From NCBI RefSeq assembly GCF_001194135.2, contig NC_068983.1, forward strand, positions 137,394,429 through 137,458,428: a stretch of 64,000 bases of DNA. Reading direction: 5' to 3'. The translations under genes and the position numbers were made by a program. The first letter of the stretch is position 1. Each line of letters starts with the position of its first letter. Shown here one piece after another: positions 26,558 through 56,664 of the stretch. The notes below the pieces were generated by a model that was given only the letters and a program-made list of their open reading frames with translations, had not been told where the DNA came from and did not search any database. The DNA comes from Octopus bimaculoides. Its lineage: Eukaryota.

Positions 26558-26758
26558 ATGGTTAAACGGTGTTGTTATGGTACATGTAACACTGACAATA
26601 GATTTCCCGAGAGGTTGGCGGGCGGTGTTCAGTTCATACCTTTTCCGAAGCCCAAACAAAACCTAGAGAAATGTCTACGATGGATTCTGTGCTGTGGTAG
26701 ACCTTCCTATCAATTCAACGTTAATCGCATCAGCAGAGCAACATATATTTGTACCAAG
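26558..26758 (+). CDS. Variable exon V3: N-terminal part of a split THAP domain (67 codons, ends ..YICTK, phase 0)
   Basis: MVKRCCYGTCNTD..FIPFPKPK..CLRW..CGRP..YICTK. Donor AAG|GTATAA at 26758/26759; the final His ligand is missing from this exon. Confidence 0.9.
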
Positions 26759-27478
26759 GTATAATTTTATCATTTTTACGAACTGTAGTTTCTCGGGTTT
26801 ATTTTAAATGTTTGCCTTTATCCTAATTTGAAAACTGATGTCTCTAGCAAGTCGAGATCTGTTTGTGTGCCTATGTAGTATTTGAGTGAGAACGAGAACT
26901 TACACACACACACACACACACAGTTCAAATTAGGTATTATATTACTTATCAAAACATGCAAAATTTTACATTATTCAAAGTGAATGTTTGTTCATGCGAT
27001 ATTATACATCTTACATTACTGCACACGGGCTTTACTTTAAAAGCAGTAAATACGAGTTTTTACTTTATTTCCTTTTTAATTTCAAAGTAATACCATGAAT
27101 ATTCATCTCTTGTTATCAATATCAAATCTATAGTCGATTATCTTAGTTTGATGTCTACCTTCATTTTTGTTTATCATAAAAATTCAGGAGCAGCTCATGA
27201 TTATTCATTTTAATTTTTAAAAATAGGTAAAGAAGTCAATATATTTGCTTCCCATGTGTTCTTGATATTCGTTATTATTAGAGCCTAAGGTTGACAGCGA
27301 GAACTTTTGTTGGCTTTTGTAATAGATATCAATCAGAATGTATTGACTATATCCTGCTTAACCATCTTCACTAGTTCAGTAGACAAGCCTTAATAGAAAT
27401 AGCATTTTTGTTGGTATCAACAAAAGCTTCATTGGTTTTAATGAAGTAGGTAAATTATCCTAATCCGTTTTAACATCC

Positions 27479-27540
<62 letters not shown>
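27479..27540. repeat. (TA)n microsatellite
   Basis: Direct reading. Confidence 0.95.
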
Positions 27541-27543
<3 letters not shown>

Positions 27544-30307
27544 ATAGATTGGAGAACACTGCACAAGGCTCATTCATCAACTTTATCAGATTCAGTTTGA
27601 TCTCCTTACATAAAGACTTTCTTGAATACCAAACTCCAATCAAATTATACACTTTTACAACTAGTTTCATGTTGCGATTATAATGAAATATATACAACCC
27701 CTCTTTCTTTTGAACTGGTTAGAGTGTCCTTTCCATTCAACTGTTTTGCCTAGCAAATTTTTATATTCAATCTTGAACATCATAAAGTGATAGGCTCGTA
27801 ACAAATCTAGTCTATGGCCCATTAATTTTCTTACAGCATTCTTAAAAATCTGTGAATATCGCAACAGTCTTAAAGGAAAATGTACTTTTCCTCACTGATA
27901 TATATCTGAAGATTGGGGGTGGGGTTCTAAATTAACTTGTGTATGTAGACTTGATAATTTGCAGTTATTCTTCCACAGAAAACAGGTTTCCATATGCCTG
28001 TTGCATTTAGTAATGTTCCTGGCTTTTTAAACTTTAGCACTGTTTGTAATCCTGTACCGTAATCACTTTACTTCTGAGTGCCTAGACACAAATTATGTAT
28101 TCCTGCTAGTTTGCAGAATATCTGAATGTAAACAAGTTCTAAGTGAAATAACTGCATAAGCAAGCTTATTTTTATATTTCCGGTTGTATTCATTTCACTT
28201 GACTTACAGTTTTGGGTTTTGAATTGCATAACTTGTGTAGAAAAATATATATTAATTCATTGTAATTTGTTATTTTGTAAATACAGCATGTTCCGAATGC
28301 TTCGAGTGTGTAAAAAAAAATATTCTCAAATGATGAGTATTTAGTGGAATCCATGAAGTTTTACATTTATGATTTAACTCACCTAAACATTTTAATGAAT
28401 CATGGAAGCTAATTATTATTTTTCTGCAAATTCCCACATCAACGGTGTTAACGCAGTCAATTGGCTATCATGTATTATGGGTTGACTGGTGTTATCAGGA
28501 GAGACGGAAAGTTTTTGAATTTCTAACCCTTGACTCTAATGATGATATATATATATATATTCAAAATTCTTTTTCAGTACTCCTTCCTTTACCATATGCT
28601 CATTGTTTTCCTCCGTCACATTCATGTAATCTTATCTTCTTGATCATCTCATTATTCTATTTACCCCTCAGTCACGTTTGTTTTGAAAGAACGAAAACAA
28701 CGTTGAATAGAGAGGACACTTTAATCATGCAAAGACAAGGTGACTTCTTTCACTGACAAATATGAGCAGACGACATTGGATGGAAAGAACCCTTTGGTCC
28801 TGTCAAGGACATCACAATCTCTCTTCTGCTGTGAGTACAAGATGCCCTCAAGCAAGTTTGTAAATGTGATGTGGATGGTGTTAACAAGAACATCCAGCAG
28901 CAGAGACCATATCCATGTCAAAAGTGTGATGATGTTCACCAACTCGTGTAGTGGTAACAACAAATAAGAACTGTCTCAGACAGTATAAATTATGATTATG
29001 GTTCTCTTTGAAATTTGGGTGCAAATATTCTATGAACAGTCGGTAAACTTTTAACGTATAGAGGTGACATCTGTTTGAATATTTAATGGTAGTTTATGCG
29101 TTTCTGCATTAAAGGTTTTGGGGGAAATAATAATTTGCATTCGCTCCCACAAAGTTTGGTAAAAGAAATCGTATGTAGGTGAATGGTGCAGTTCAATGTT
29201 AACTGCTTGAAAAATTGAGTTGATAACCACGTTTTAATATTCGTAAATTTTAGAGAAATTTCCGTGAATTTTTAATGAGGGGTGGTGGGGTTACTCTCTG
29301 AACTTAAATCTGAATCTTGACATTTGTTCAGCATATGTTTATGAGTTGGGTTGAATTGAGCTCGGTTTGTACATATATTGACTATACATGCAGAAGACTA
29401 TGAACCTAATTCTCTTGATTGCAAAATCATTAGTGTCGTACTGAAGAGTATTTAGCTACGTTCTAAGTTAAAATCTGGGGGTCGACAAAAAAAATTAACA
29501 GTCAAGTACTAAGATCCATTTATATTCCTATAATACATTCTTAGATGTGAATAAAATTATAAAAGACATTCTACTCTTCCTTCGAAACGAAAAATGAATT
29601 TCTTTTGTGGTGAATTTATTGTTATTGTTGAAGTATGTCAAATAGTGGGTTAAGAAATTGAAATATGATATCGAAATTGGATTTAAGTTGTTTTCTATTT
29701 ATATATCTCTGTCCCTCCGTGTCGTTTATTCGTTTCTCTCTATCTTTTCCGCTGTTCCTTAGCAACACGCTCTTCCTATTGCTGCAAATACAAGTTATGT
29801 GCCATATATGACCCAATGAATCATAATCACCGACTCAACACTGGGTCGCAATTGTTAAGCTGTTAAACTACTATCTCTCTCTCTCTCGCTCGCTCGCTCA
29901 CTCTCTGGTTTTTATTCATTCACTGTTCTGCTTTTCAGTGACCATATGTCTTTGATGCTTTAAATGAATTTTCTTAAACACTTCAAAATTTTAAAATGGT
30001 AATTATCCTAATCCAGTGAACCTAGACGGACACACATCTACTATATAGGCTCGTATGTATTTCTGAATAGGCGCGTGCATCACCTATTTCATAGACGCCT
30101 TAAGTTACCTTACATTTCCATTTATTCCGTAGAATCACCGCGTTTCACTGTTGAATTTCAGCATAATACTCGTTTGTCAATACGAGACAGTAAAAAATAT
30201 AACCTGATCTTTTTAAATTTACCCTCACTCAATGTTACGGAGCTATTCAAATTCTTATACATACTCTCCAAAATAAACATTTAAAATTTTTGCTTTTGAA
30301 TTAACAC

Positions 30308-30658
30308 ATGCCACATTGTATAGCATTTGGTTGCACCAGCCACGACGGTCGATTACCTCGTCATATTCGGTTGCATTGTTTTCCGAAGGACCGAGAAAAA
30401 TGTCGGATCTGGGCCCAGAACGTGGGTATTGACTCTGGCCAGTTGGAGAATTTTCTTGATATGACATGTTCAAACATTGCAAAAATACGGTGCAAGATTC
30501 GAATCTGTACGCGCCATTTCGAAAGTCGGTATTTAGAGATCGGCTACCGCTGCAAATTACCACGAATGAAATTGAAACCTGGTGCAATACCCACTCTTTT
30601 TCATAGTAAAGGATCTTTACCACAAAAACAGACTACTGAGGATGACAAACGGATTACT
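30308..30658 (+). CDS. Variable exon V4: complete THAP domain, paralog of V1 (117 codons, phase-0 donor)
   Basis: MPHCIAFGCTSHDGRLPRHIRLHCFPKDR..RICTRHFE..LKPGAIPTLF. Donor ACT|GTAAGG at 30658/30659. Confidence 0.85.
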
Positions 30659-30744
30659 GTAAGGCTTACCTTTACGATTGTTCATTATTATTATTAATTT
30701 TGTTGGTTATATTCACAGTATTATCTTATTCTTTTTCTTGTTTC

Positions 30745-31050
30745 AGTCTTTGAACTGCGACCATGCTGTAGCACCGTCTTGGCGGGTCAGTCGAACAAAT
30801 CGACTTCAGTGCTTTTTTTAAAATTAGATACTTATTCTCTCGGGTCTCTTTTGCCGGACCGATAAGTTGTCAAGCGGTGGGAGTCTGTTCAATATGTAAA
30901 TGCACACTATACACATAAGACGAGTTTTCACAATTTCTGCCTATTAAATTAATTCACAAGGCATTAACATTGGTCGACCTGGTGTTGTGGAAGACACTCA
31001 CCTAAGGTGTCGTGCAGTGGGATTGAACCTGAAGCCACGTGGTTGCGAAT
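30745..31050 (-). mobile_element. tRNA-derived SINE copy (degenerate)
   Basis: Shares GTTTCAGTC..GACCATGCTG..GCAGTGGGATTGAACC blocks with the copies at 32953 and 55149. Confidence 0.6.
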
Positions 31051-31833
31051 CGAAAGCTTCGTCGATAAATTAACTGCTATATAAATTGCTGGATTTTATC
31101 CAATCGATCACGCCTTTATTTAAAATGTGTGAGTAACTTATGGGAAATATATTATACACGTTGTTACTGTTATATTCTCATATTAATACAGCAGAAACAG
31201 TGCATTTCACTTGAAAAATATCTTACTGCATTTTCTTCATTCATTCCCTAATAAGTTAAGTTTACGTACTAGAAAAACCGGTTACAATTACTGTAAAAAT
31301 TTTAGATTTCAACTAAAAGAACGCAAACCGGTAGTAAGGAAGAAAGAACAAAGCAGTTATTAAATGAAGTATGCACAACTCCCACAGTTTGTACTATGCT
31401 TGAAGGAATGTTGGTATTCCCCTCTAAAAATGTGTATGATAGCCAAGTACACCTACTGAGCATCATCTGATACTTGAGGGAGGTGGGATGCGAAATCGAT
31501 AAAAATAAGATATCAGTTTTGCACTAGTTACTTTAGTCGACTATACATACTCTCAGGGAAGTTTATTGAACTGCATGTGCCGTCAGTATAACATTAATCA
31601 TGTTACGCATATTTATTATGCTTGTGCCATTTAAGAAAATATGTAGAGTTTATGGCGTATGCATATAGCATAAAAAAAATTCCCCTTTGGGGAACAAAAA
31701 TTCCAGCTAAAATAAATGCATCACATTCTCTTTTCTTAATACACAGGAACCCGCTTATAACCATAGGTATTTACTTAGTGGGCTTCAAAACACTCCGTGT
31801 ATTTTTTTTATCTTTTGCTTATTTTCTTAAAAG

Positions 31834-31834
<1 letters not shown>

Positions 31835-31867
<33 letters not shown>
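31835..31867. repeat. (CT)n microsatellite
   Basis: Direct reading. Confidence 0.9.
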
Positions 31868-32594
31868 CACGTGTTTGTCTTGTAATCCTGTAGAATGGAG
31901 TAAGATTGCAATTCTCCAGTTTGAGGTGGGAATGTGCCCCCACCCCCAAATTGTTTATATTTCTTACAGCCACTCGCTTTCCTTTTTTTTTTTCTTTTGG
32001 TTAGAGTGTTTTTATTTTGGACTTTTTCGTTTCAGCCCACTCTTAGATTTATATTTTAGAGCTCTGACATGATACTGCAACAAAAAAATCAATATTTTAA
32101 TTTTATTCTTATTAACACCACCTTGCACCTTGGGCAGATTCCATCTGTTGCAAGCATTCAGGCCTTTTCTCTGGTTTAAGGATGCCTTCCTCTTCCCTTT
32201 TCTCTATTCACAGTGGCCCTTTGCAAGGTTATGAGCACTGGCTTTTCTCCTGACTAAAACAATTTAAAAGGGGTATACTTGTAAATGTACATATATATGA
32301 TGGCTATTAAGTACATGTATGTCTGCATGTACATACAAATATATTTGTGCCAGCATGTCTCTGTGACTAAGAAGCTGACTTCCCAATGACATGGTTTCTG
32401 GGTCAGTCACACTGTGCAATACCTTGGGCTATAATTTTCTACCTTTGGGTAAAGGAAAATACAGGAGGATCAGTTAATTATGCGGCGCTGGGTACAGGTG
32501 CCATCACGAATTTCGCTTTCGCGTGCCCCAACAGGTCTTCGCAAGCCTAGTTTAGTGTCCAATGAAGGAGATGACGTTGGCATGGGTGAATGAT

Positions 32595-32632
32595 GATATA
32601 TGTACGTTTGTATATATATATGTATGTATGTA

Positions 32633-32692
<60 letters not shown>

Positions 32693-32952
32693 CATGCATG
32701 TATGNNNNNNNNNNTATATATATGTGTGTGTGTGTGCATGCATGTATGTATGTGTGTATATATATATATATATATATCTGTGTGTGTGTGTGTATATATG
32801 TATGTATATGTATATATATATATGTGTATATGTATATATATCCCATGCTAGCATAGAAAGCAGACGTTAAACAATGATGTATATATATATATAGATATAT
32901 ATATATATATATTATGTATGTATATATATATATTATGTATGTGTATATGTAT
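32595..32952. repeat. Compound (TA)n/(TG)n/(TATG)n microsatellite with a 10-nt gap at 32705-32714
   Basis: Direct reading; accounts for the YI/HT-rich spurious ORFs. Confidence 0.95.
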
Positions 32953-35577: not shown

Positions 35578-36735
35578 ATGGATACTTTTGCTGTTGATGG
35601 GCAACATAAGGTCGTGCCTAAAAATACAAGACGTGCCAATGAAAAAGCGGCCCGTGCTTTACGGGATTATTTAAAAGATAACAGTTTATCCACAGATTTC
35701 GAATCTTTGGACGCCAAAGAGCTGAGTGAGCTGCTGGTATTATTTTACCGAGATGTACGAAAGCGTGATGGTGATCAATATAAGGTGACCAGCTTGGAAG
35801 GCTTCCGATATGCACTTAACCGATACTTTCGGCTTCCACCGTATCTTAAAACATTTGATCTCATTAAAGATGAGATATTTGAAGAAGCTAATGCTCATTT
35901 TAAAGAAACTGTTAATGAGCTGAAAACTAGTGGTAAAGGTGAAGTAACCCATCACCCTATTATTTTGGATGAAGATTTAGAAAAGTTATATTCATCCGTT
36001 TATTTTGACATCAATACACCGTTAGGCTTACTGAATAAAGTACAATTTGAGATCCGGTTATATTTCTTCCGAAAAGGTCCCCAGAGTATGGTAGAAATGA
36101 CTAAGAAGACGTTCGAAGTCCGCGTTGATTCGCAGACCGGGTATAAGTATATGTGTAAAGCTGAAGAACAGTCCCCACGCAGTTTGAAGACCAAGACCGT
36201 ATCGGTGTGTTCTGCTTCTAACATCCAAGCAACAGGTCCGTCTGCAATTGACATTGAAGAATTAACATATATCGTTGAAAGGCCCAATGATCCAAACTGT
36301 CCTGTGAAATCATTTGAAAAATATAAGAGCAAGCTCCATCCGCTTTGCCACCGATTATGGCAAAGACCGATATCTCCTTATTCGCCCGAAGGCTCAGTCT
36401 GGTATCGAAACATTGCTGTAGGTCGAAATACTTTACAAAGGTTTATGCCTGAACTTAGTCTTGCCTGTTCACTCTCACAAAAGTACAGCAACCATTCCAT
36501 TAGAATAACTGGTTCCAACAAGACCGTTTTATCTGGGGGTTACAATTTTACTTTGCCGTATGCTAAAGATTCTCGCCTCGAGCGTAAAACCTTAGAAGGT
36601 GAATCAAATCATTCTTCAAACTCTGGTGCAACGCTTTTAGCTAGCTCAACGAATGCTCGGGTTATTGATAATTCTGGTGATGGTTCTCTGGACCTGCAGG
36701 TAACATTGATACGCAATGGCACTGAGAAGGACCAG
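35578..36735 (+). CDS. Variable exon V5: second Crypton tyrosine-recombinase-derived (DUF3504-like) domain (386 codons, phase-0 donor)
   Basis: Intact ORF with VPKNT, FYRDVRKRDGDQYKVTSL, TPLGLLNKVQF, CPVKSFEKYKSKLHP, WQRP, WY..VGRNTL and YSNHSIR. Acceptor ACAG|T-ATG. Donor CAG|GTAGGT at 36735/36736; alternative CAG|GTAACA at 36699/36700, also phase 0. Confidence 0.85.
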
Positions 36736-38500: not shown

Positions 38501-38659
38501 CAAGTTGGTTTTCAGCTCGGAGCAGTAGAGTGTCCATTTAAGAGTATACTTTATTGGCGCAAGTTAGAGAGGTTAACATTAACTAAATTTTCTTCAAGAT
38601 CATAACCTTTCAGCGCAAACGGCTTATTCATGTTGTGACCTCCAACAATCTGTGTCACC

Positions 38660-38772
38660 CATTTCAACCAATCAAATTCTTCGACTTATCATCACACCCC
38701 TCTTGTTCTGTCATGTCAGCCATTTTAGTCAGTCAAGCCTTTTCTGTTGCCTAGTCGGTTAAGAATAGTGTA
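38660..38772 (+). promoter_or_regulatory. Putative promoter/leader of V6
   Basis: CCAAT at 38668-38672, YY1-like CAGCCATTTT at 38717-38726, possible acceptor CTAG| at 38754/38755. Confidence 0.4.
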
Positions 38773-38979
38773 ATGGTGAAGCGTTGTGCATGGGGTTTGT
38801 GTAATACAGACGACCGTTATCCTGAACGTCTGTTCGGTGGTGTTAAATTCATACCATTTCCGAAACCGCGGAGACAACGAGACAAATGTCTTCGTTGGAT
38901 TGAACGTTGCGGTCGAATTCCCGAGCAACTGAACGTTAACATTGTTGACGGAAACAAAAACCTTTACGTCTGTTCAAAG
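38773..38979 (+). CDS. Variable exon V6: N-terminal part of a split THAP domain (69 codons, ends ..YVCSK, phase 0)
   Basis: MVKRCAWGLCNTDDRYPERLFGGVKFIPFPKP..CLRWIERCGR..YVCSK. Donor AAG|GTAAAT at 38979/38980. Confidence 0.9.
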
Positions 38980-40259
38980 GTAAATAACTCTGGCTTCTAA
39001 TTTCAGCCTCTCTTTGTAATCGTAACAACTTTAAAATCTGGATTTTCTACTTATGAATTAATTTAATTTTACTCATTAATATTCTTTATAATGTAAATTA
39101 AATATAAACGGATAAAGTTTTTATATTTAAATTTTCACTTGTGATTATAGAATAAAATTACTTGTTGAGCTTATCCTGTAAAGTTTATGCTATTGCTTGC
39201 TGAATGTTTAGGAAAAAAATACAGAAAATTATTGCTTGTTTTGTTTAAATTAGTTATACTATTTGAGGGCCACTGATTTGTGCCAAATTGAAAAAGTATT
39301 TTTAAAACCCATTTCATTTTTCAGTACTTATTTTATTTTCACTTTTCCATCATATATTAGTTCTTCCTACATTTTTGTTGCTTCATCTTTCATGTCTCTC
39401 TACAGAAAAAAAAAATCTACCTAAAAGTAAAGTCCGCTAAAAATATTGAGCACAGCGATACCTGATACTACTTGCTGAAACGTACCATCGTTGAAAAAAA
39501 AAATTACCTTAATATTTATGGTATTTAAATGTGACGTTTCCAAACAAAATTGTATCTATTTCTATAGTTAGATAAGTATCGACTAAATGTCTTTAATTGT
39601 ATCTAATGTGCATTAATCTTTGTATGGTAAATGCTGGCGTGAGAAGAGTGAAGCTGATGATATGATACAAAAATGTTTTGCCTTCTGTCATGTTCGAATG
39701 TCTTGCTGTGTGCGTGGTATGTAAAAGGGGTTGTATGGAAATAATGGTGAAAACTTGAGTTATACAAGGTAATATGCATTTACGGATGAAAACCAAAACT
39801 TGGTTCGACTGTTAATTAGTAAACTATATATTATATTATATTTATAAATGTTATTGCTATGAGGATCAAGAAGAAATTCGATTTAGGTTCTTTTTAAAAT
39901 AGGTGCCAGTTAAACTGTTATCTTAGTACTGATGTTAGAAATCATGTAAACCTAGGATGAAATACATTGCAGTATTTAAGTCATTTAACTATTTAAGTAC
40001 CATTGATGTACTGGGACCAATTTGTTTTAATGCCAAAAATTCCTATTTTAACATTTGAACCATCTAATCTCGAAGTTCATATATACTACCATTTGCATCC
40101 CAACTGTTTCCGGTGTTATCGTGTTTATATATCACATGACCACGGTACAAACAGTATTTCCGCTTTTGCCAGGAGTAAAGCATATCAGTTTTACTAGCAA
40201 ATATATAATTTTCCCTTCCTTCTTACGATTTTTTAAACATCTTTTCAGGAGTTCCAAAA

Positions 40260-40466
40260 ATGGTAACTAAGCGTTGCGCTTGGGGTACTTGTCGTAGTGA
40301 CAGTCGGTACAAACATAAACCTCACATGCTGAACGTGTTTTTTGTATCTTTTCCTAAGCCTAAGAGTTCTCTGGAGCGTTGTATACGTTGGCTTGATGCA
40401 TGTTGCAGGCCTTACTATCAGCTGAATATTAATAAAATTAAATCGCATCACTTCGTCTGCTCGAAG
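40260..40466 (+). CDS. Variable exon V7: N-terminal part of a split THAP domain (69 codons, ends ..FVCSK, phase 0)
   Basis: MVTKRCAWGTCRSDSRY..FPKPK..CIRWLDACCRP..FVCSK. Acceptor CTTTTCAG| at 40248/40249; donor AAG|GTAAGC at 40466/40467. Confidence 0.9.
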
Positions 40467-42066
40467 GTAAGCCGGAATTAATAATATACATTTGTTTATT
40501 CTTGTTTGTTATGGAAACAAAATATTCCTCTGTTCATAAGCGTGGCTCTGTTTAACCACCACCTGGTTTTTGGATGACTTTAGCGTAGTCCACTCTGTTG
40601 TAGACATTCATATCAGGTCTATGAAGAGCTTTCTCTCCTAAGCTCTAAAACTAATATTTGTAGACAATTATTTCACATGTCATTTCTGGCTTGATAATTT
40701 ACCGTCTTAGGCTATCTATCAGTCAGCAAGGGAAACAAATCGTAATTAAATTACACCCTGCTGCCTTACATAGATAATGAACTCTGTATGATCCCTTTAT
40801 TTTAAAATTAGCACCCAAATTTAATTTAAATCACATCCTTATTGATTCTCCCTACGTGAGCTGACGAAGGAGTCTTACACTGCATCGAATCTTGAATTGG
40901 TTGAAGTAGCAGTCATATTTCCTTCCTTGTTTTAGATAGCTTCGAAACAGTACTTGTATCTGTGTAGTTACTTGTGTATCTTTTTCTGTGTAGTTACTTG
41001 TGTATCTTTTTCCATCAAACATAAGCTCCGTTTTAATTAACAATTGCAATCCAGTAACGATACCTCGCAGCAGTGCCTGAGAATCCGAGCACGCTTTTGT
41101 TTTTCGTAGTGCGTTATGGGTGGAATAATAGTGATGCCAGGAATTGTTTATTGTGAGTTTTCAACTTTTAACGTCCTAAATGTGAATTACTCGGGTACTG
41201 TAAGCGTAGTGTAGTGTCTGCGTTAGGAAAGACTAGAATGTAAAATACAGTTGAGAAAATAAAGTGCACACGAAGAAACATGTATTTGGTGCCCCAAACC
41301 CTTGTAGTAAATTAGACAGTGGGGAAAAACTGGAAAAATTATTAGTGTCCTGGCTTGACGATGATGATAACGTCCCTGTTTTGCAGGCGGTCATTCTGAA
41401 CAAAGTCCTTATTTGCCTGAATATGAAGAGTCAAGATAGCACTAACATTTATGGTCAGCAAAGGGTGGTTTCATTAAGACCAGAGTAAGGGAAACAGTAT
41501 AATTGTTTCATAAGAATAAATAAATAATTATAGAACAGAAATATTGAGAATAGATTTTAGCAATTTGGAATTTCTCATTAAATCTTAATTTGGTCCTAGT
41601 GTGTGAATGATGTAGATGTGCTATTTTATAATTGCCCTTTTCTATCTTCATGTAAAAACTTTGTGGCAACGTTCTTTATTCAGAAATATACATTGGAGGT
41701 GTACAACATGCATCCCACCCCATTTTATATTTTCAACTGTCAGGTGGACGTAACTGTTTTGGGTTCGTTTTCATATCGTAGATATTTATCAAGAATAGAT
41801 CCGTAATCAATCTAAAACTAATCGTGTGAATAAAGGGCAGAACGGTGTGCGTACAAGTTATTAAAATCATATTAAATTTTTATTGCCATGGACCACAAAA
41901 ACGGTTGTAGTAGTAGTAGTAGTAGTAGTAAAATGACGTTTTCGTTTGGGAGCTGGGTAGGGCTATTAAGCTAATTTAGTTGTGAATATGTTTTGAAAGG
42001 TAAATAACCAAATGCAATAAACTTTACTGAGTGTAAATTTCCTTACTTTTTGAAACCGTTCAGTGT

Positions 42067-42099
<33 letters not shown>

Positions 42100-42380
42100 T
42101 ATCATTGTGGATTCCGAAAGTCGTCCTTATCTGACAGTTGATTTCATTACTTACATCCTTTCTTTTCTCGTTGGTTATTGTGCTCATGCGCTTCTGTTCA
42201 ACTAATAAAACCATGAAATGGTTGGCAGCTCCATCCAGAAGTCTTGCGTTTAAATTAGATAGCTGTAGTGACGATGGTATTTAGTAGCATTAGTTATGTA
42301 TGTTGTAGTGTCGGTTGTGCTCTCCCCTTGCCTCTAACTCTTGTTACTGAGCTCTCTCCCCTCCCTGCAGTCAGCTCGCC

Positions 42381-42578
42381 ATGGTGCGCCGATGTGTGTG
42401 GGGTTTGTGTAACGCCGACGAAAGGTACCCAGAACGAATAAACGGTGGATTTTTCATTCCTTTTCCTAAACCGCGTACAAAGCTAGAAAAGTGTTTGCGT
42501 TGGATTGAAGCATGCGGTCGGCCGTATTCTCAACTAAATGTATTCAAGATCGATCAGAATAAATATGTCTGTTCAAAG
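42381..42578 (+). CDS. Variable exon V8: N-terminal part of a split THAP domain (66 codons, ends ..YVCSK, phase 0)
   Basis: MVRRCVWGLCNADERYPER..FIPFPKPR..CLRWIEACGRP..YVCSK. Kozak GCTCGCCATGG; pyrimidine-rich acceptor CTCCCTGCAG| at 42370/42371; donor AAG|GTAAGG at 42578/42579. Confidence 0.9.
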
Positions 42579-43432: not shown

Positions 43433-43500
<68 letters not shown>

Positions 43501-45189: not shown

Positions 45190-45920
45190 CCAAGATATGG
45201 AAGAAGTTTGGTGTCTTCATGGCGATGAGATTATGAGAAATGGTCTTCATCTGTTCTCTGAGTGCATAGAGTAAAACAGTTAAAGGAGTCATTGCCTTTA
45301 CTGGCAACAAAGAGATTCTCTTCAAGCAAAAAGTTGACTGGAGAGAATGTGAAAGCCTGAAATGAAATAAGCATCCCACATTGGAGGTGTAATATTAGTG
45401 TACATGAGAGCAATGTGGTAGAAAGAGAGAATCTGGATATAAGAATCAGGTGTAGTGTCCAAGAGAGACAACTGCATTGGTACAGACATGTATGGGTAGG
45501 TTGATTAGATGTACCCAGCAACTCAACGGGAGAAAGCTGTTGATAAAATAACACAAGTGGAGAGGGACTAGTTCACCTATGTATGCATTAAAAAAGCAGA
45601 TGTAAAAATAAAACTGTTTAATATTGTCTAAATATAACATGCAGCTATCATGTACTACTGCATGAACACTCAGAACACAACTAATTAATGTCTACATTTG
45701 TGTAATAGTTATGACTCCTATGTACTCTACTCTTTATTACTTACCCAACCCTGCTGTTTTAAATTGATACAGAGGCAAAAGAGATGTTCTAGAAAGATAA
45801 AACTACAGAAGTATTGAGCTTTTGGACCTGGTTGTTAAAGTTATAGAAAGGGCTATTGCAAAACTGATTTAGAAGAGGATTAGGCTAGTTGAGGTGTAGT
45901 TCAACTTTGTCAGGAGGAGG
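45190..45920 (+). mobile_element. Two decayed RTE-LINE RT fragments
   Basis: 45190-45560 has GAGTCATTGCCTTTACTGGCAACAAAGAGATTCTC, matching the RTE at 22448. About 45800-45920 reads NYRSIELLDLVVKVIERAIAKLI, like RTE NYRGIKLLD..KV.ERVI. Confidence 0.6.
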
Positions 45921-45975
45921 TACTTCTGCTTCTATTACTTCACTAGCACTATCTCTCCAATTTCACCCAATATGG

Positions 45976-46117
45976 NNNNNNNNNNNNNNNNNNNNNNNNN
46001 NNNNNNNNNNNNNNNNNNNNNNNNNNNNNNNNNNNNNNNNNNNNNNNNNNNNNNNNNNNNNNNNNNNNNNNNNNNNNNNNNNNNNNNNNNNNNNNNNNNN
46101 NNNNNNNNNNNNNNNNN
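45976..46117. other. Assembly gap flanked by a duplicated 319-bp segment
   Basis: 45657-45975 reads the same as 46118-46436. Confidence 0.95.
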
Positions 46118-46960
46118 ACTGCATGAACACTCAGAACACAACTAATTAATGTCTACATTTGTGTAATAGTTATGACTCCTATGTACTCTACTCTTTATTA
46201 CTTACCCAACCCTGCTGTTTTAAATTGATACAGAGGCAAAAGAGATGTTCTAGAAAGATAAAACTACAGAAGTATTGAGCTTTTGGACCTGGTTGTTAAA
46301 GTTATAGAAAGGGCTATTGCAAAACTGATTTAGAAGAGGATTAGGCTAGTTGAGGTGTAGTTCAACTTTGTCAGGAGGAGGTACTTCTGCTTCTATTACT
46401 TCACTAGCACTATCTCTCCAATTTCACCCAATATGGTAAGCAAACAAACAAGACCTCATAGGGTTGAGTGAACCCTTGTTATTGCCTTGCAGACACACAA
46501 ACCTCTCTAGTATTAGTGCCACCAAAAAATACACTCTGTAAATTAATTCTCTTACATTATTTACCTCCCTAATGACTATTATCTTACATCTGTAGATTGT
46601 TGTTACATGTAGTGAGAGATACTATACACCATGTCACTTTGTGTTGTAACAAGTGACAGAACAGTTGGTGTTAAAACACTACCCCAACATGTAGGTTTCT
46701 ATGTACACACACATATATATATCTGAGGTGCAGTCAATCTAGATGGATCAGGAAAATGCATCTTGCTCATATTTAACAAGAAAAATTACTAATAGACATG
46801 TCATGGTGTGGCAGATGCAGTAATAGTAAACTTTGCAGAACATATACATGCATAACCACGTCTGTGAGGCTAGGAAGTTCACTTCACATATGTGACTTTG
46901 TGTCCAGTTTTTCCTTAAATCTATTATGTATAATAAATATTAAAGTATACATGTGTGTGT

Positions 46961-50365: not shown

Positions 50366-51109
50366 GTCATACCTAATACAAGTTTATGTATGGTGTGTGC
50401 ACTCTACTTTGCACTTTCTCCTCATTAAGCTTTCCTCATTTATCTTAATACCCATCTATCCATTGTGACTTCAAAGTTTTGGTTTCTCACCGTCATCTGA
50501 TGACAATGAGCATGCACTCTACTGGCAGCAACGTGGCTATGTCAACAAGAAGTTTGTTTCACTATCTTCTGCTACGGCCACAGTGTGATAAAATTTGGTG
50601 AACAGAAACAGGACATTAAATGGTACCAATTTTTCTTTAAGCAATGCCAACTTAAAGACAGACATACTTCACAACACACTTCTGCAGTTTCCATCTACCA
50701 TATTCACAAGGTTATCACCTAAACAGATGCATGGTTAAGTAATTGACTATGTATGTATGCATAGAAACGACTGTAAATTCATACAACACCCACCTTTCTG
50801 TTTTATGCTGTATTTTGTAGACATTCTACATGTGTAGTATGAATATTTTGAGCCAATAAGGGAACCTGTGATAAAACTAATTAGCTGATTTAATTACCGT
50901 TTTATAGTATATATTTTATAAAAAAAAAAAGTAAGCCGCCATAGTGTTGAACTTTGGAGTTCAACTTTTGTACCTGCTTTTCATCTTTCTCATATCGGTA
51001 AAATATTAATCCACGGCGTTAGATTGGCAGAATCAGAACATTAGACAAAGGTCTGCTTGCACGCACACACCCACTGACCTGGGATGGAGCACGAAAAAGT
51101 AGCCCGGAT

Positions 51110-51803
51110 TTTGTAGCGTAGTTTAAATACAAAAATAAATTTACACATGAAAAATATCCAGCTTTTCGTTTGCATGTGCCATTGTGTTATTTTGACTGAA
51201 AAATTAACCCGAGTTCCGTAGCATAGTGTAAATACAGAAATAAATTTACACAAGCAAAAAACGCACTCAGCCTTTCGTTTGCAAGTGCCATTGTGTTATT
51301 TCGACCGCTTGTAACTGCTGATCAAAGATAGCGTACGGGTCGACTGTTTGCTACGTTATCTCTCATCACATTATTTGATTGTATGGTTGCGTTGAGTAAA
51401 TATCTCTGGGGGTTTTCTGCAAAATGACGTACTCAATAGCAGAAAGGATGGAGATTGTGAGAACGGGTTCTGTTAAGCAAACGTGTTAAATTTTTTGAAG
51501 TTAAGTTTCCGGGTAAAGGCTTACCGGCAAAGAGAACGATACAAATGTTGGTTAAGAAGTGGCGCACCACGGGGTCAGTACACAATGCCCCAAAACCAAG
51601 AGACCCTACTGTTCGAACGCCAGAAGTTATTCAGGACGTTCGCCAAAGGATTACTCGAAGTCCAAACAAGTCGACACGTAAATTGGGCGCAGCAGTCTCA
51701 CATAAGCAGGAGGACATCCCAGCGGGTGTTGAAAAGTCTAAAGTTGGATCCAACTGATTTCACATGTGTATAGCAATTAAAAGTGGATGACAAGAACAAA
51801 CGA
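51110..51803 (+). pseudogene. Mariner-like transposase 5' fragment (DUF4817-like HTH) with upstream ~110-bp tandem duplication
   Basis: From ATG 51424: MTYSIAERMEIV..KKWRTTGSV..VRTPEVIQDVRQRITRSPNKSTRKL/AQQSHISRRTSQRVLKSLKL..KNKR. Stops at 51487 and 51771 plus two frameshifts. Duplicated block ..CTTTTCGTTTGCATGTGCCATTGTGTTATTT at about 51115-51200 and 51220-51305. Confidence 0.7.
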
Positions 51804-52299
51804 GTAAATTCATTTCTATATATACACTACGCTACGGAACCCAGGCTACTTTCGTGCACCCACACACTAACCTTTTTATATTTCTCCCTATTTCTGTGTA
51901 AACTGTTCTTTAAGAGAATAATGAGGAATAGGATGGAACATTTTTAGATTGTTATTGATATCGATGAAAGTAAAATGATTCCAAATTAGAATCGAAATCG
52001 AGTGCCCAGGCTCGCTTCCCCTTCTCCTTGAACTTTCAATGTTTTCTCAATAGTAGTTTGTTGCTTTGCAACATCTCGGCAAATTCTCGCGAGAATCTTT
52101 AACGTTATTATGGAAGTCTTCTCTGTGGATGACACGGTGGCGGTTGTCTGTGTTTCGTAGTTTTTAATATTTCATTTGCTTTTTTTATATATATTTAGAA
52201 GTTGTTGTTTTTTTTTTACGTATATTATTGGATTTGTGAATTAATCTAGAAGAATTCATGTCAGATACTCAGAAGAAACATTACGTTGTTTATTTAATT

Positions 52300-52330
52300 G
52301 TGATTTACAAAATGGCCGACTGTTTCAGAG
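52300..52330 (+). promoter_or_regulatory. YY1-like element in a CpG-rich region upstream of V9
   Basis: CAAAATGGCC at 52308-52317, inside a CpG-retaining stretch (about 50900-53250). Confidence 0.35.
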
Positions 52331-52818
52331 AGACACTGAAAATCGACGATTTCACGTAATGTGGGGCTTGTATTTTTATATTGTCAACATATCTATTATA
52401 TGTTCAGATCTTCTAATATAGCGAAAACTTGACAGTTTTCTGTGCGTATATTGAAGATATGATCCTCTTAAAAGACTGATTGTTAAAAAAAAGTCGTTAT
52501 TCGATCACGTCTGACGTGTCGGTAAACAAACGTCAAGGTCCTGCGGAAAAAATAAATAGTTATAGAATTTGCGTTCGTTTTCTTGTATTTATTTTTATTA
52601 GTATTCCATACTTAGGAGTCGAAGAATGCTTAGTGTAAAAATACTATTGTAAATAGTTTTTACTGCACTTCTTCGTACGAAATCGATTGCTGTATTAATA
52701 AAATTAAATGGAAAGGTAACGAATGCTATTTCTAATTATAGTATGATAAAAAGATTGAGTTGTTCGGTGTAAGTGGCTTACTGAAGAAATTTGTTGTTGG
52801 AAATTTTGGAAGTCAATT

Positions 52819-52995
52819 ATGGTTCAGTCGTATGTCCGGAAAACAGACAATGGGAAGTGGTCATCTAGCCAGATGGTTTCTGCCGTATCAGCAGTACTGT
52901 CTGGAAGTCTCAGTATTAGAAAAGCTGCTAAGAAGTTCGCAATCCCTAAAGCCACACTCGCTCGTCATTATAAAAAACCGTGTTATTCCTTCTTA
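52819..52995 (+). CDS. Variable exon V9: pipsqueak-type HTH (pogo-like transposase N-terminus; 59 codons, phase-0 donor)
   Basis: MVQSYVRKTDNGKWSSSQMVSAVSAV..LSIRKAAKKFAIPKATLARH fits HTH_psq. Donor TTA|GTAAGT at 52995/52996; no DDE domain follows. Confidence 0.75.
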
Positions 52996-55148
52996 GTAAG
53001 TAATTCTCACACGCACACACACATATGTATGTATATATATATTTCTATATATATAAAATATCGTTGTATCAAATTTGTTTATTACATACATTACGTCTTT
53101 AAAGGCTACTTAATTCTAAATTAACTTAAATTTGTTTAATTTTCTTCATTTGCAATGTATGGACTTTTTTGTTATTTTCTATGAAATATTTGAAAAATAA
53201 TTCGATGGCATGTATTACGTATCTGGTGATAGCTTACTTTAAAAAGGTCTGTCAAAAAGAAAACAGTGAAGGGGAAGGTAGATGTTATCCACATCAGAAA
53301 TCGTTATTCGAACTCTTTACTACTAAAGCATTTTTTCAAGAATTATGTTTCTTGATAAAAATTAAAATTTTTATACTTACCCAGCAATGTTGATTAGAAT
53401 GCATAAATACTTATACACACACTAGCATTGCATTAAATATTAAACTGTCCATGGATTTATTCCAAAATAAGAAGGGTTCCACTTTCTATTATCGACTGTT
53501 AGAACAGTATATGCACACAAATACATATATTTCATATGTATTTATATATTGTTGTGCATGTGTGTGTACATCTAGACATGTCTTCTGGCACATAATGACT
53601 TAGCAAGACGTTCAAACGTTAACTGAAACAATTCTAAATATATGTAGAGCTTAAAATTTATGCTTACAAAGAAAAGATTGACAGTGAGACCTGACTTTGT
53701 AGTTACACTTGTGATTAGGTTCATCAACTCTTGGAACCAATCCCCGATGAAATAAAAACACTGACAACCTGTTGTTCATCATTGATCAATCCGACCAAGC
53801 ATAACCTGGGGCTAAACAAAGAGCCCTGTGCAGTTAGTTTCTTGGCCTAACTAAATAGCAGATGTCCTTTCAAATCACACCCTACCATTTTAAGAATGTA
53901 TGAGGGACATGGGACACCCAGTCATGACTTGGGGCTAAACAAACGCATACAATCAGATTAAATGGTTTCTATTAAGGACTGGAGAAATATAAGATTTTCT
54001 AAACTCAACTCTTCCTGTTCTCAACCATTACCTGATTTAAATTCAGGCATTTTTATTTTCATTCCAATGATCTTTGAAAACACATGTCATATTGTTAACT
54101 GGGGATATAAACATCCACACTCACAACTGGCATCCCTATTGTTTCCATTTTCCAATTTCTCTTACAAGGCATTAGTTGACCTCCAGCTGTAGTACAAGAC
54201 ATTTGCCCAAGTTGCCACTTCGGATAACATGTTATGAAGTTAACTCTGTTCATATGGCCATGTGTCTATTATACAGTAATGCCTTGATATAAAAGTTACT
54301 CTTTTCCCAGAGATAGCTTGTAAAACGAAAACACATGAAGCAGAACAATAATTTCCCAGAAAAAATATTTTATCTGTAAAATTTATAATACTCATAGATA
54401 GATGGCAATAAGACAACAGTAGAATGTAAAGAATATCAAGATCATTTATAATAAAAAAATATTTTTATAATCATTTTCTGAATCAATTTCACTTACACTA
54501 GACTCATGCCACCATCACTTGCAGACACGATTGCCAATTTGCAAACACTTGTAGACGGACTTGTAGATTTCTTTTTACATAACAAGTCTAGAGTTGTTTG
54601 CTTAGAAGCTTTTTTTCACTCTCTAAATTTCTCAGTAATACACAGGAACATTTATGGTAGTAGAAATTTTTGCACTTCATTCAGAATTTGGATCTTGAGT
54701 TTGAAAAATAAAACTCGTAATGTGAGGTATTAATGTATGTTAATTGCATCCATACAGCCACATGTAATGATGAACTAAATCTACCAACATTATTATGGAT
54801 CGCTGAGTCCCCAGAAATAGCTGTTGGACTTATAATAACCCCTTTTTAATTCTCTCTGTTGTTTGTACTCTGTAAGTTGGACCTGTTGTTATAAATATAT
54901 ATTTATACTTCATCATCTGAAAGTATCCATCTTTTGCTTTCTCTTGTTTTGCATATATACATACTTCATATTTCATTCCCAAACTAATATAGTTGATATA
55001 TCCAGTTTGTTTATTCACGTGATTGCCTCTATGTGTGTGTATATGTATAAGCAGGTACGTGGACACTACATATCCAGATGCTAGGTTCTCATGCTCACCT
55101 CTCTTATTAATACAACCTTTCTTCTTGATTTTCTTTTATTCTTTCTTT

Positions 55149-55515
55149 TACTTGTTTCAGTCATTTGACTGCAGCCATGCTGGACCACCGCCTTTAGTCG
55201 AGCAAATCAACCCCAGGACTTATTCTTTGTAAGCCTGGTACTTATTGTATTGGTCTCTTTTTACCGAACCACTAAGTTACGGGGACGTAAACACACCAGC
55301 ATTGGTTGTCGAGCGATGGTGGGGGGACAATCACACATACATACATATATAATATATATATATAATGTGACGGGCTTCTTTCAGTTTCCATCTACCAAAT
55401 CCGCTCACAAGCTTTGGTCGGCCCGAAGCTATAGTAGAAGACACTTGCCCAAGGTGCCACGCAGTGGGACTGAACCCAGAACCATGTGGTTGGTAAACAA
55501 GCCACTTACCACACA
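55149..55515 (-). mobile_element. Near-full-length tRNA-derived SINE
   Basis: Reverse complement begins with the tRNA-like head ..GTGGTAAGTGGCTTG..GGGTTCAGTCCCACTGCGTGGCACCTTGGGCAAGTGTCTTCTACTATAGC. Confidence 0.85.
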
Positions 55516-56568
55516 CACAATATCTGTAAGCATTTCTTTGTAGCTGGGCTGTTTGGGTGAGAGATGTCATTATGCACTCTTAAAATAAATTAACAGAAAT
55601 TACAAAAATAAAAGGCATATAACTTACATGTTATAAATTATGCCTTCTGTATTGACAATAAATGTAGATTGCTTGGAGTATATGTTAATGTGTGTGGTAG
55701 CCATAGAACAATGAATGTGGAAAAGTTCTGATAGGGTTTGGGGGAATAATATTCTACTTCCATGAAAAGCAGAAGTGCCAATGAACTGAAAGTGAAGTAG
55801 GGCATTTAAAGAGCTGAAATATATGTAAGGGTGGTGATGTGAACAATAGATGCTGGATGAAAATGTGTTGTTTGTTAGATACTTACTTACCACAGTAAAA
55901 TGCAGTAAGAAATATGGTGCAGTTTCAAATAACACCATGTCAATAAATCTTAAAAGAGTAGGGCAATAAGTGATGGTATATAGAATCTAATGCTAATATC
56001 AACAAAAGGGCATTGTAATAATAATCCTTATTTAATTTTATTACTGTATTACTTTCACTATTTGCTTGTCTTAACTAATTAATTACCAACAGCACTAATT
56101 TATATCTGAGTGTGCTGTACACCAGGAATTAACTGCTAGTGGCACCAGTTCAGTTTTGAAATAGTAAACTTGCATTTGGAAATTTCAAAAGTTAGGGGGG
56201 GGGGTTCTGCAAAGTGACAGCCACAAATGACCTCCAGCGAAACTGATAATCAAATAACTTTATAGTTCCACAGATATTCTTTTAATTTGAAGGCAACATT
56301 GGACGTTGATTTTTCCATGATGAAATTTTAACATGAAGTTTCAGGTAATGGAAGTAGTCAACTCACAGACACATACACAAAACTTAGTTTGCAAGTAATA
56401 TGGCACAAATACCCTACATCTAGTAGTGGGTCGGTGTATATGTCAATTGACTACTTACTATTTCCATGATGCTTCATTCTAAAATTTCTTAATATATTCT
56501 GATAAATTTTTGAAACCTAACGTATTACCTTATGTTCTAATACCAAATCTTATTTTCTTCCACTCCAG

Positions 56569-56664
56569 CATTTTGTTGGTGGCAATGGACCTACACGAGA
56601 CCACCCTGATCCTCTACCTGTCAGACCAATGAATGTTCTCCATTCCTCAGCTGGTTACATAGAT
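56569..56664 (+). CDS. Shared (constant) exon C1: HFVGGNGPTRDHPDPLPVRPMNVLHSSAGYID; completes the split THAP finger
   Basis: Strong acceptor TCTTATTTTCTTCCACTCCAG| with branch-like TTCTAAT and consensus donor GAT|GTAAGT. 96 nt, phase 0-0, open frame starting His-Phe. Confidence 0.9.

Follow-up and report, generated by a model that had tools for sequence, protein, structure and literature searches.

Drosophila lola joins a common BTB domain to ∼20 variable zinc-finger exons, and tandem alternative first coding exons, each with its own donor and all sharing one constant-exon acceptor, are found in the clustered protocadherins and UGT1A, where any variable exons in between are spliced out with the intron. 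Drosophila mod(mdg4) likewise combines a common BTB with more than 30 variable zinc-finger exons (PMC13490949, PMC6237743). In transposase-capture fusion genes the DNA-binding domain of a transposase is joined to host domains via transposon splice sites (bioRxiv 10.1101/2020.05.07.082677), while the published content of the transposon ISL2EU is a THAP+HTH+DDE transposase plus a YqaJ gene (PMC4482050). The Octopus bimaculoides gene LOC106877732 is like each of these in part. It spans ∼195 kb, includes as its central part the 64-kb stretch of DNA analysed here (the window), and has many alternative first exons, each with a different transposon-derived DNA-binding domain, that lead into one BTB/POZ-containing common body in at least 36 isoforms (RefSeq predicted models).

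With mod(mdg4) and lola the locus shares one BTB body and dozens of alternative DNA-binding modules, and by domain content it appears to be a gene of that type. The BTB domain of the constant part (Pfam, 42 bits) is present in every isoform examined and matches BTB structures in the PDB down to an E-value of 1.3e-10, the best being IVNS1ABP and ZBTB/BCL6-type domains. The arrangement is reversed, however: the heads are encoded on the 5′ side and form the N-terminus, with the BTB domain ∼190 residues downstream of the shared exon C1, whereas in the Drosophila genes an N-terminal BTB of the TTK type precedes 3′ variable exons. The heads also differ from those of mod(mdg4) and lola in being heterogeneous and transposon-derived (Pfam THAP, HTH_psq, CENP-B_N with HTH_Tnp_Tc5, BrkDBD, HTH_29 and DUF3504), and there is no sign of the trans-splicing known from mod(mdg4), all exons of the window being collinear and on a single strand. 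At the level of predicted models the gene has the form of a variable-first-exon cluster, several alternative first coding exons sharing one acceptor, with exact predicted isoforms for V2 to V8 and the same join also shown for V1 and V9. Unlike protocadherins and UGT1A, the variable exons are not one paralogous family but at least five unrelated DNA-binding kinds, and for four of them a fold is split across the variable/constant junction. We found no paper on LOC106877732, the isoforms of which are already annotated in RefSeq, and no comparable cephalopod case in the papers searched.

The four alternative first coding exons concerned, all on the + strand, are V3 (26558-26758; THAP residues 1-67, ..YICTK, donor GTATAA, phase 0), V6 (38773-38979; residues 1-69, ..YVCSK, donor GTAAAT), V7 (40260-40466; residues 1-69, ..FVCSK, donor GTAAGC) and V8 (42381-42578; residues 1-66, ..YVCSK, donor GTAAGG). 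Each begins with ATG, ends in phase 0 and carries three of the finger's four putative zinc ligands (in V3, Cys5/6, Cys10 and Cys65), and the original observation that all four end in C(S/T)K followed by GT at an equivalent position is correct. They match one another with tblastn E-values of 1e-17 to 1e-29 and 43-68% amino-acid identity, V7 being the most divergent; because they are true paralogues, the common C(S/T)K ending is due to descent and not to chance. The remaining ligand comes from C1 (56569-56664, + strand). This shared internal exon is 96 nt long, begins and ends in phase 0, and encodes HFVGGNGPTRDHPDPLPVRPMNVLHSSAGYID. As had been claimed, C1 starts with CAT TTT GTT GGT GGC AAT GGA CCT, here directly after ttattttcttccactccag, and lies 14-30 kb from the split exons (13,990 nt from V8 and 29,810 nt from V3). 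It ends in GAT before the donor GTAAGT, and gives V3, V6, V7 and V8 the His and Phe of the C2CH site as well as a PDP box. Its residues are identical to residues 193-224 of XP_014782195.1 (32/32), and 31 of 32 are identical in Argonauta hians GAB1599653.1 and O. vulgaris CAI9720178.1. The names of the O. vulgaris and Argonauta entries were apparently assigned by homology.

Test proteins consisting of a V exon, C1 and the constant part of XP_014782195.1 were compared full-length with the RefSeq isoforms, whose XP_ records are predicted models. In agreement with the shared-exon model first proposed, those built with V3, V6, V7 and V8 are exact full-length matches to XP_014782221.1 (X31), XP_014782219.1 (X29), XP_014782220.1 (X30) and XP_014782222.1 (X32), respectively. 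Exact full-length matches were likewise obtained with V2 (21166-22260, + strand; DUF3504 first exon, Pfam 35.5 bits, donor GAG/GTTAGT; XP_014782191.1, X2), V4 (30308-30658, + strand; complete THAP, Pfam 53.5 bits, donor ACT/GTAAGG; XP_014782205.1, X16) and V5 (35578-36735, + strand; DUF3504/QRICH1-like by Pfam, donor CAG/GTAGGT; XP_014782190.1, X1), and the joining method is therefore validated. A search with C1 retrieved XP_014782195.1 and an Argonauta homologue, while searches with V+C1 queries retrieved no spliced V-C1 contig. The V-C1 joins are not new as such, since RefSeq has them as predicted isoforms. It is very likely that the donors of V3, V6, V7 and V8 splice to C1, completing a C2CH THAP finger in BTB-bodied isoforms of LOC106877732.

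While C1 joins all four split exons, the shared-exon model needs amending in that C1 is not reserved for them. In predicted isoforms, 14 or more unrelated first exons that each encode a complete DNA-binding domain (complete THAP, DUF3504, HTH_psq, CENP-B and Brinker) also splice to it, directly or via a mini-exon, and there it is a linker only; isoforms X18 and X28 skip it altogether. V1 (16050-16409, + strand), a complete THAP of another subfamily (Pfam THAP 53.6 bits, donor GAC/GTAAGG), is joined to C1 as linker in predicted isoform X13 (XP_014782202.1), which uses 16140-16409. V9 (52819-52995, + strand), an HTH_psq first exon (Pfam 42.2 bits, donor TTA/GTAAGT) that splices to C1, forms the start of O. 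vulgaris CAI9720178.1, a protein that continues ..CYSFL and then HFVGG. A single 96-nt exon would thus be read in two ways, as a structural part of the THAP finger for four heads and as a linker for at least 14.

The classical THAP signature is C-X2-4-C-X35-53-C-X2-H. In the octopus exons the C2CH signature is complete only after splicing, as C5-x4-C10-x56-C67-x2-H70 in V6+C1, and the Cys2-Cys3 spacer (x53 in V8+C1, x54 in V3+C1, 53-56 overall) reaches or slightly exceeds the upper classical limit. The expected dependence of the finger on C1 is borne out by the Pfam THAP profile (PF05485, gathering threshold 23.9 bits): without C1 all four fall below threshold (V3 none, V6 21.5, V7 none, V8 19.5 bits), and with C1 all rise above it (31.2, 32.0, 31.8 and 30.1 bits, respectively). 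The match spans profile positions 1-58 of 87, and the C-terminal box, which is PDP (P82, D83, P84) rather than AVPTIF, is not recognised as an AVPTIF box. The PDP box is near-invariant in the family, as are the FPKP prolines, Trp42 and His70-Phe71 among 92 family members, and it may be equivalent to the AVPTIF box. AlphaFold2 gives V6+C1 a pLDDT of 86.9 and a pTM of 0.75, with residues 1-89 confident, against 74.7 and 0.52 for V6 without C1, the five models of which are unstable (47-75), in a comparison confounded by alignment depth (92 versus 21 sequences). Foldseek with the V6+C1 model returned three THAP domains (2jm3, 2d8r and 2jtg) as the only PDB matches, with weak E-values of 0.26-1.2 and TM-scores of 0.38-0.48. 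Like the cellular THAPs (human THAP1 and THAP2, C. elegans CtBP THAP), the split octopus THAPs have the C2CH zinc signature, HF after the third Cys and, as predicted, probably the β-α-β fold class, and differ in the PDPLP box, which replaces AVPTIF and is outside the Pfam match, and in the longer Cys2-Cys3 spacer. The assembled V+C1 domain would be expected to bind zinc and DNA.

All four split exons have orthologues in relatives. That of V3 (L014:9758-9958) has 89.6% amino-acid and 78% nucleotide identity (pN 0.063, pS 0.79), those of V6 in contigs L014, L016 and L001 have 92.8% and 79-84% (pN 0.04-0.05, pS 0.59-0.79), and that of V7 (L016:2629-2835), 1.49 kb after the V6 orthologue, has 82.6% and 77%. 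The orthologue of V8 (L015:1222-1419) is identical in 66 of 66 amino acids and 86% of nucleotides, with 28 synonymous and no non-synonymous differences, and across the V-exon orthologues pN of 0-0.063 compares with pS of 0.59-0.79. V3 and V6 lie on one contig (L014), V6 and V7 on another (L016), and an overlap of L021 and L015 bridges V7 to V8; the exons are under strong purifying selection, and their order is conserved. Cross-species similarity is limited to exons, donors (the first 11 intron bases after V6 are conserved) and short blocks upstream of V3, V6, V7 and V8. Weak similarity reaches ∼230 nt upstream of V3. The block upstream of V6 (38662-38748, + strand), the sole non-coding block alignable with three relatives (E-values of 2e-4 to 6e-6), has the core CCATTTTAGTCAGTCAAGC at 38720-38738, a motif unique in the window, with a CCAAT box nearby, and is a candidate promoter or 5′UTR of the V6 first exon. 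The short conserved upstream blocks may mark a promoter of its own before each V exon.

The closest relatives of the split exons are transposon-encoded. In Pinctada, Haliotis, Saccostrea, Tegillarca and one ENA contig a THAP gene has a first exon ending in CxK and a second exon that starts with HF 0.25-1.8 kb further on. Beyond it come a YqaJ gene (− strand) and a DDE_Tnp_4 transposase (+ strand) in four of the five loci, the Saccostrea contig ending just after the THAP gene, and the gene set agrees with the published content of ISL2EU (PMC4482050, PMC9179366). The octopus exons have the same phase-0 intron between C-x-K and H-F; similarity extends over both exons of the pair, that of exon 1 ranging from ∼45% to 78% (V6 against the Tegillarca element copy), and C1 fits the exon-2 consensus HFVGGxGPTxxxPDPIPA of the family. 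Judged by sequence, C1 is a homologue of exon 2 of the ISL2EU THAP gene, and the comparison shows the K/H-F split to be the ancestral intron of that gene, in which exon 2 is private, inherited and not an invention of this locus. The octopus locus differs from ISL2EU in that it has four copies of exon 1 and a single exon 2, which lies 14-30 kb away and splices on into a BTB-domain host protein.

If each split exon retained a private His-encoding exon of this kind, it could have been missed through being hidden in a gap, too diverged or begun by something other than HF. The exhaustive site scan upheld the earlier claim that no better HF-initiating open exon lies between the split exons and C1: of 14 AG/CAYTTY sites in the window only that at 56569 opens a frame longer than 25 codons, and of 82 AG/CAY sites downstream of V3 only the same one has the family motif HF..PDP. 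No second copy of C1 was found in the window by tblastn with C1, and no private His exon appears as a conserved block in the relatives' contigs L014, L016, L015 and L001, whose collinear conserved blocks are V exons and nothing else. Two gaps do lie in the V-to-C1 interval, yet both are unmerged overlaps. That at 45976-46117 sits between two copies of one 319-nt sequence that agree without a mismatch (45657-45975 and 46118-46436), so the sequence is continuous, while the 10-N gap at 32705-32714, in a TG/TA microsatellite and intronic for the V3 isoform only, has a 34-nt exact flank overlap that is weaker evidence because the sequence is of low complexity; being intronic in every isoform concerned, the gaps raise no question of reading frame. 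The V6-V7 and V7-V8 intervals have neither gap nor candidate, and the one other acceptor with an equally good polypyrimidine tract (42932, HLHTHTKEKK..) opens, just 3′ of a CA/TG repeat, a frame that lacks conservation in L015, a contig extending 3 kb past V8. We regard missed private exons as extremely improbable. Just as improbable is translation of the V exons unspliced, as proteins of ∼70-75 residues acting without the fourth ligand: an older single-exon 73-residue UniRef model (P0066) reads V7 through its donor, and many family ORFs in databases read through as CSKV.., but these are calls on unspliced genomic contigs, orthologues share the donor but not the sequence after the Lys, and the V exon alone is below the THAP threshold with a less stable predicted fold.

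We consider it very improbable that V3, V6, V7 and V8 are 5′ remnants of decaying ISL2EU copies, with RefSeq isoforms over-predicted by chaining orphan exons to the next acceptor. The split-THAP family is indeed encoded by transposons and occurs in great numbers in molluscs, fish, cnidarians and other groups, exon 2 is private in autonomous ISL2EU copies, and the gene interval in GCA_001194135.2 also contains a small DDE_Tnp_4 gene. The window itself, however, has no YqaJ or transposase remnant (tblastn with both L013 proteins, E > 1), and the same queries recover both genes in L009, L010 and L012. The four exons share one orientation, all upstream of the only exon-2 homologue; ATG, frame and donor are intact in every copy, and dN/dS is ≤ ∼0.04 where estimable. 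The V3-V6 and V6-V7-V8 order is the same in species whose non-coding DNA no longer aligns, and this conservation argues against recent insertion. It is also possible, if unlikely, that the V+C1 isoforms are made but that their THAP-like module does not function in zinc-dependent DNA binding and could instead be a decoy or a protein-interaction head competing only via the BTB body. The partial match to the Pfam profile (58 of 87 positions), the weak Foldseek E-values and the Cys2-Cys3 spacing of 53-56 residues point in that direction, against which stand the retention of all four ligands and of the near-invariant residues, the confidently predicted fold through residue 89, and very strong amino-acid conservation, complete in V8 while synonymous sites are near saturation.

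In the favoured reading, in which the four donors splice to C1, V3, V6, V7 and V8 are old tandem paralogues that go back to the first exon of an ISL2EU (PHIS/Harbinger-like) THAP gene, each probably with its own promoter, and C1 is the only homologue of its second exon to have survived. Joining the phase-0 V donor (C-S/T-K before GT) to the phase-0 acceptor of C1 (AG before CAT TTT) would recreate C-x2-H-F and add the PDP box, and the complete C2CH finger of these heads would exist only in spliced mRNA. V donors would pair with C1 because the V exons downstream of them are first exons without acceptors, probably the same pairing logic as in the protocadherin and UGT1A clusters. The gene may have originated when a captured transposon THAP exon 2 was spliced into a BTB gene, other first exons later adopting its acceptor.

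A wider reading, for which we see the case as evenly balanced, sees in LOC106877732 a cephalopod hub, built up by serial transposase capture, at which DNA-binding domains are swapped. Its founding event would be the splicing of an ISL2EU THAP exon-2 donor into a BTB gene, C1 then becoming the universal acceptor for at least two dozen later heads, with only the four descendants of the founder's exon 1 using C1 within their fold, and the whole would be a convergent mirror image of mod(mdg4)/lola outside arthropods. Heads recruited later would include other THAPs, pogo CENP-B/psq, Crypton-like DUF3504, Brinker-like domains and, possibly in a relative, FLYWCH. Compared with the described transposase-capture fusions, capture here was apparently serial, with many unrelated transposon domains at one locus, and the captured second exon is now the common acceptor exon. 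The locus may offer a concrete, testable cephalopod case of repeated transposase capture and a non-arthropod counterpart to mod(mdg4) and lola.

Introns inside zinc-finger domains are common, but in LOC106877732 the intron falls at the boundary between the variable and constant parts of a gene with many isoforms. The dual use of C1 probably records how the gene was built, a two-exon transposon THAP having been captured and its exon 2 turned into a docking exon for later heads. The 73-residue UniRef ‘protein’ is best reread as an unspliced first exon, and the orphan CSKV.. ORFs of the split-THAP family in many genomes as exon 1 of a split domain.

The four split-THAP alternative first coding exons, each carrying three of the zinc ligands, lie on the plus strand exactly where the original prediction placed them and end in C(S/T)K at a GT, with the donor boundary after the lysine: V3 (26558–26758, ..YICTK/GTATAA), V6 (38773–38979, ..YVCSK/GTAAAT), V7 (40260–40466, ..FVCSK/GTAAGC) and V8 (42381–42578, ..YVCSK/GTAAGG). 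All four start with an ATG and end in phase 0, and their mutual similarity (tblastn E 1e-17 to 1e-29, 43–68% amino-acid identity) shows that they are paralogues, so the shared C(S/T)K ending is inherited. The shared exon C1 (56569–56664, plus strand), which supplies the His-Phe of the finger, follows a strong polypyrimidine tract with its AG, starts CAT TTT GTT GGT GGC AAT GGA CCT, ends GAT/GTAAGT and is in phase 0 on both sides. Acceptor-like sequences precede the ATGs of V7 (window 40229–40259, plus strand, ..tcttttcag) and V8 (42350–42380, plus strand, ..ccctccctgcag) by 10–11 nt. They could be fortuitous, mark an intron in the 5'UTR or offer a way of chaining exons; the one before V7 would keep the frame of the V6 donor. 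P0066, a 73-residue UniRef protein, is V7 translated past its donor (40260–40481, plus strand; ..CSK+VSRN), an older gene model having treated this true first exon as a single-exon gene.

Against the Pfam THAP profile (threshold 23.9 bits), V3 and V7 alone gave no match and V6 and V8 gave 21.5 and 19.5 bits, while V3, V6, V7 and V8 joined to C1 gave 31.2, 32.0, 31.8 and 30.1 bits, respectively; this comparison, proposed with the original prediction, thus places all four exons below the threshold alone and above it with C1. The Pfam match ends at position 58 of 87 in the profile, and recognition of an AVPTIF box is absent from it; we infer that the near-invariant P-D-P box of the family plays this role. 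An AlphaFold2 model of V6+C1, with an input alignment of 92 family members, has a mean pLDDT of 86.9 and a pTM of 0.75, with residues 1–89 confident, including HFVGGNGPTRDHPDPLPVRP of C1. Its only three matches in the PDB are all THAP domains (2jm3, 2d8r and 2jtg), with weak E values (0.26–1.2). The V6 read-through product lacking C1 reaches a pLDDT of 74.7 (five models, 47–75) and a pTM of 0.52, a difference that is indicative only, as the alignment holds 21 sequences versus 92. Profile scores and models support V+C1 as a THAP finger completed by splicing, with putative zinc and DNA binding.

An exhaustive HMMER search with C1 led to two long proteins, XP_014782195.1 (“uncharacterized protein LOC106877732 isoform X5”, Octopus bimaculoides, 758 residues), whose C1 segment is identical to the window at 32/32 residues, and GAB1599653.1 of Argonauta hians, identical at 31/32 at the protein level; the names of the O. 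vulgaris and Argonauta proteins were apparently assigned by homology. No homologous protein candidate was found with a 41-residue read-through C1 query. In both proteins C1 is internal, preceded by a variable N-terminal DNA-binding domain and followed by a long constant part, in which a BTB/POZ domain scores 42 bits in Pfam and has BTB matches in the PDB with E values as low as 1.3e-10. The V-C1 junctions were examined by building each V exon, C1 and the constant part (from XP_014782195.1) as one protein and looking it up by exact sequence. All four split-exon products are present in RefSeq as exactly matching predicted models, that of V3 as XP_014782221.1 (X31), V6 as XP_014782219.1 (X29), V7 as XP_014782220.1 (X30) and V8 as XP_014782222.1 (X32), in agreement with the shared-exon model. 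These RefSeq isoforms did not show in homology searches with V+C1 queries, probably because they belong to a cluster of 32 members at 90% identity that is represented by X18, an isoform with a different head.

A private second exon encoding the His was also sought for the split exons; in the window only 56569 fits, whether judged by AG/CAYTTY sites, AG/CAY sites with an open frame, the family motif in six frames, or tblastn with C1 and the second exons of homologues. The exhaustive scan of the whole window for AG/CAYTTY returned 14 sites, 56569 alone being open for more than 25 codons, which upholds the earlier claim that there is no better HF-initiating exon, and among 82 AG/CAY sites 3' of V3 it is again the only one with the family motif. 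A second copy of C1 was not found in the window by tblastn, and 42932 was rejected as a private exon, lying just 3' of a CA/TG repeat and lacking conservation. Nor do the contigs of relatives contain a collinear conserved block besides the V exons and their flanking blocks, i.e. no conserved private second exon. Two assembly gaps, at 45976–46117 (142 N) and 32705–32714 (10 N), are intronic in every isoform concerned, and the reading frame across them is therefore irrelevant. The former lies between two exact copies of a 319-nt segment (45657–45975 and 46118–46436, 0 mismatches), the contig to its right opening with the sequence that closes the left contig, and appears to be an unmerged overlap with continuous sequence; at the latter, within a TG/TA microsatellite, the evidence from a 34-nt exact flank overlap is weaker because the sequence is of low complexity. 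The chromosome-level assembly carries the gene on a single 168-Mb record, with isoforms joining these exons. A third gap (398 N, window 22673–23070), about 400 nt past the donor of first exon V2, has flanks that do not overlap, unlike the other two.

LOC106877732 extends over about 195 kb, with at least 36 isoforms annotated, and the first exons of those examined encode several kinds of THAP, CENP-B_N with HTH_Tnp_Tc5, HTH_psq, Brinker-type HTH, winged HTH and DUF3504 domains. V1–V9 splice directly to C1, the upstream group of first exons reaches C1 and the constant part via a common mini-exon (..DTQNVQISKQTHRFST) located outside the window, and C1 is skipped by two isoforms or more (X18 and X28 among them), whose heads join the next constant exon, AGPSNQ... 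No constant exon 3' of C1 was found in the window, either in the frames of 56.7–64 kb or by tblastn with the XP_014782195.1 tail, and these exons therefore lie past it. Built with C1 and the constant part, V4 (30308–30658, plus strand, complete THAP), V2 (21166–22260, plus strand, DUF3504, phase 0) and V5 (35578–36735, plus strand, DUF3504, phase 0), all with donors predicted from sequence, match X16, X2 and X1 exactly. The V2 and V5 ORFs are DUF3504/QRICH1-like and resemble stand-alone intronless genes, but are actually first exons of X2 and X1, isoforms with O. sinensis counterparts XP_029634399.1 and XP_036357306.1. V1 (16050–16409, plus strand), a THAP first exon, also joins C1; the full V1 from 16050 with C1 and the constant part is absent from the protein collection. 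Isoform X13 (XP_014782202.1) begins at an internal Met (16140), the ORF having its ATG at 16050, so that it lacks the first Cys pair of an otherwise complete V1 THAP, and its start may be a mis-annotation or an internal transcription start site. The ninth first exon, V9 (52819–52995, plus strand, HTH_psq), joins C1 from a phase-0 donor (TTA/GTAAGT). O. vulgaris CAI9720178.1 has an N-terminus identical to V9 and then runs directly into C1. Heads other than V3, V6, V7 and V8 have a complete DNA-binding domain before the junction, and for all of them C1 is a mere linker. Alternative promoters would be the simplest account of how a head is chosen: as in the protocadherin and UGT1A clusters, the donor nearest the cap would pair with the first acceptor.

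Contigs with orthologues of the split exons come from at least two other species and probably a third. V3 and V6 orthologues lie 8 kb apart on L014, those of V6 and V7 1.5 kb apart on L016, those of V7 and V8 are linked via an L021/L015 overlap, and a V6 orthologue is on L001. Outside the coding exon, similarity to the window is limited to 3–11 nt at the donor and to short blocks further upstream. Differences per site between orthologues are 0–0.063 (non-synonymous) versus 0.59–0.79 (synonymous), and the 66 codons of V8 differ from its orthologue by 28 synonymous and 0 non-synonymous changes, a pattern indicating selection on the split V exons as exons of the host. The 19-nt motif CCATTTTAGTCAGTCAAGC (38720–38738), which lies upstream of V6, is kept in three relatives and would fit a promoter or 5'UTR of V6 itself; it occurs once in the window, and a promoter motif shared by all V exons was rejected. 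Between the V7 and V8 orthologues, L021 contains an 84-residue FLYWCH ORF (2728–2943) with a phase-0 GAA/GTAAGT donor, which has no counterpart in the window and may be an additional first exon specific to that lineage; the variable exons of mod(mdg4) encode this domain.

Homologues of the split-THAP exons are very abundant in molluscs, fish, cnidarians, annelids, echinoderms and others, and many database ORFs of the family run “CSKV..”, i.e. past the same donor. Five loci in other species have a first exon ending C-x-K and a private second exon beginning HF..PDP; the spacing is about 0.25 kb for both Haliotis and Saccostrea, 0.45 kb for Tegillarca, 1.3 kb for Pinctada and 1.8 kb for an ENA contig. 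After the exon pair, four of the five loci have a YqaJ exonuclease gene, encoded on the opposite strand, and a DDE_Tnp_4 transposase; the contig from Saccostrea stops just past the THAP gene. YqaJ and DDE_Tnp_4 together with THAP constitute the gene content of ISL2EU, of the PHIS/Harbinger-like superfamily (PMC4482050, PMC9179366), and with the structure of the five loci this makes the K-H intron ancestral to the transposon THAP gene. The finger assembled only by splicing, put forward in the original prediction, is thus true here but also of the whole transposon family, and is not peculiar to this locus. Neither ISL2EU transposase nor YqaJ left any trace in the window by tblastn with both proteins, so a transposon body was rejected and the locus is not an ISL2EU member as mobile DNA; it derives from ISL2EU elements. 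The most economical history would be that a BTB gene captured an ISL2EU THAP gene via the exon-2 donor, that exon 1 of the captured gene was duplicated in tandem, and that further transposon-derived first exons were recruited later to the same acceptor. Compared with the transposase capture already described (bioRxiv 10.1101/2020.05.07.082677), capture would here have been applied serially.

Drosophila mod(mdg4) and lola each join a single BTB to dozens of exons for DNA binding (PMC13490949, PMC6237743). The predicted isoforms of LOC106877732 likewise pair one BTB with many DNA-binding exons, but with reversed polarity, heterogeneous heads and nothing suggestive of trans-splicing. The splice pattern itself is not new, since RefSeq already lists the isoforms publicly as predicted models; our literature search found no paper on LOC106877732, LOC115209932, THAP with alternative first exons or octopus BTB/THAP isoforms, and what is new is the interpretation of C1 as a relic of transposon exon 2 with a dual use, and the overall view of the locus. 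The intron 3' of C1 contains a degenerate fragment resembling a non-LTR retrotransposon reverse transcriptase (..LDISKAFDHVWHARLSKL.., window 58256–59150, plus strand), with no Pfam match. In GCA_001194135.2, outside the window, the 195-kb gene has a small HTH_Tnp_4/DDE_Tnp_4 gene nested within it close to its 5' end, and the next gene 3' of LOC106877732 also encodes CENP-B_N, HTH_Tnp_Tc5 and BTB, in 646 residues.
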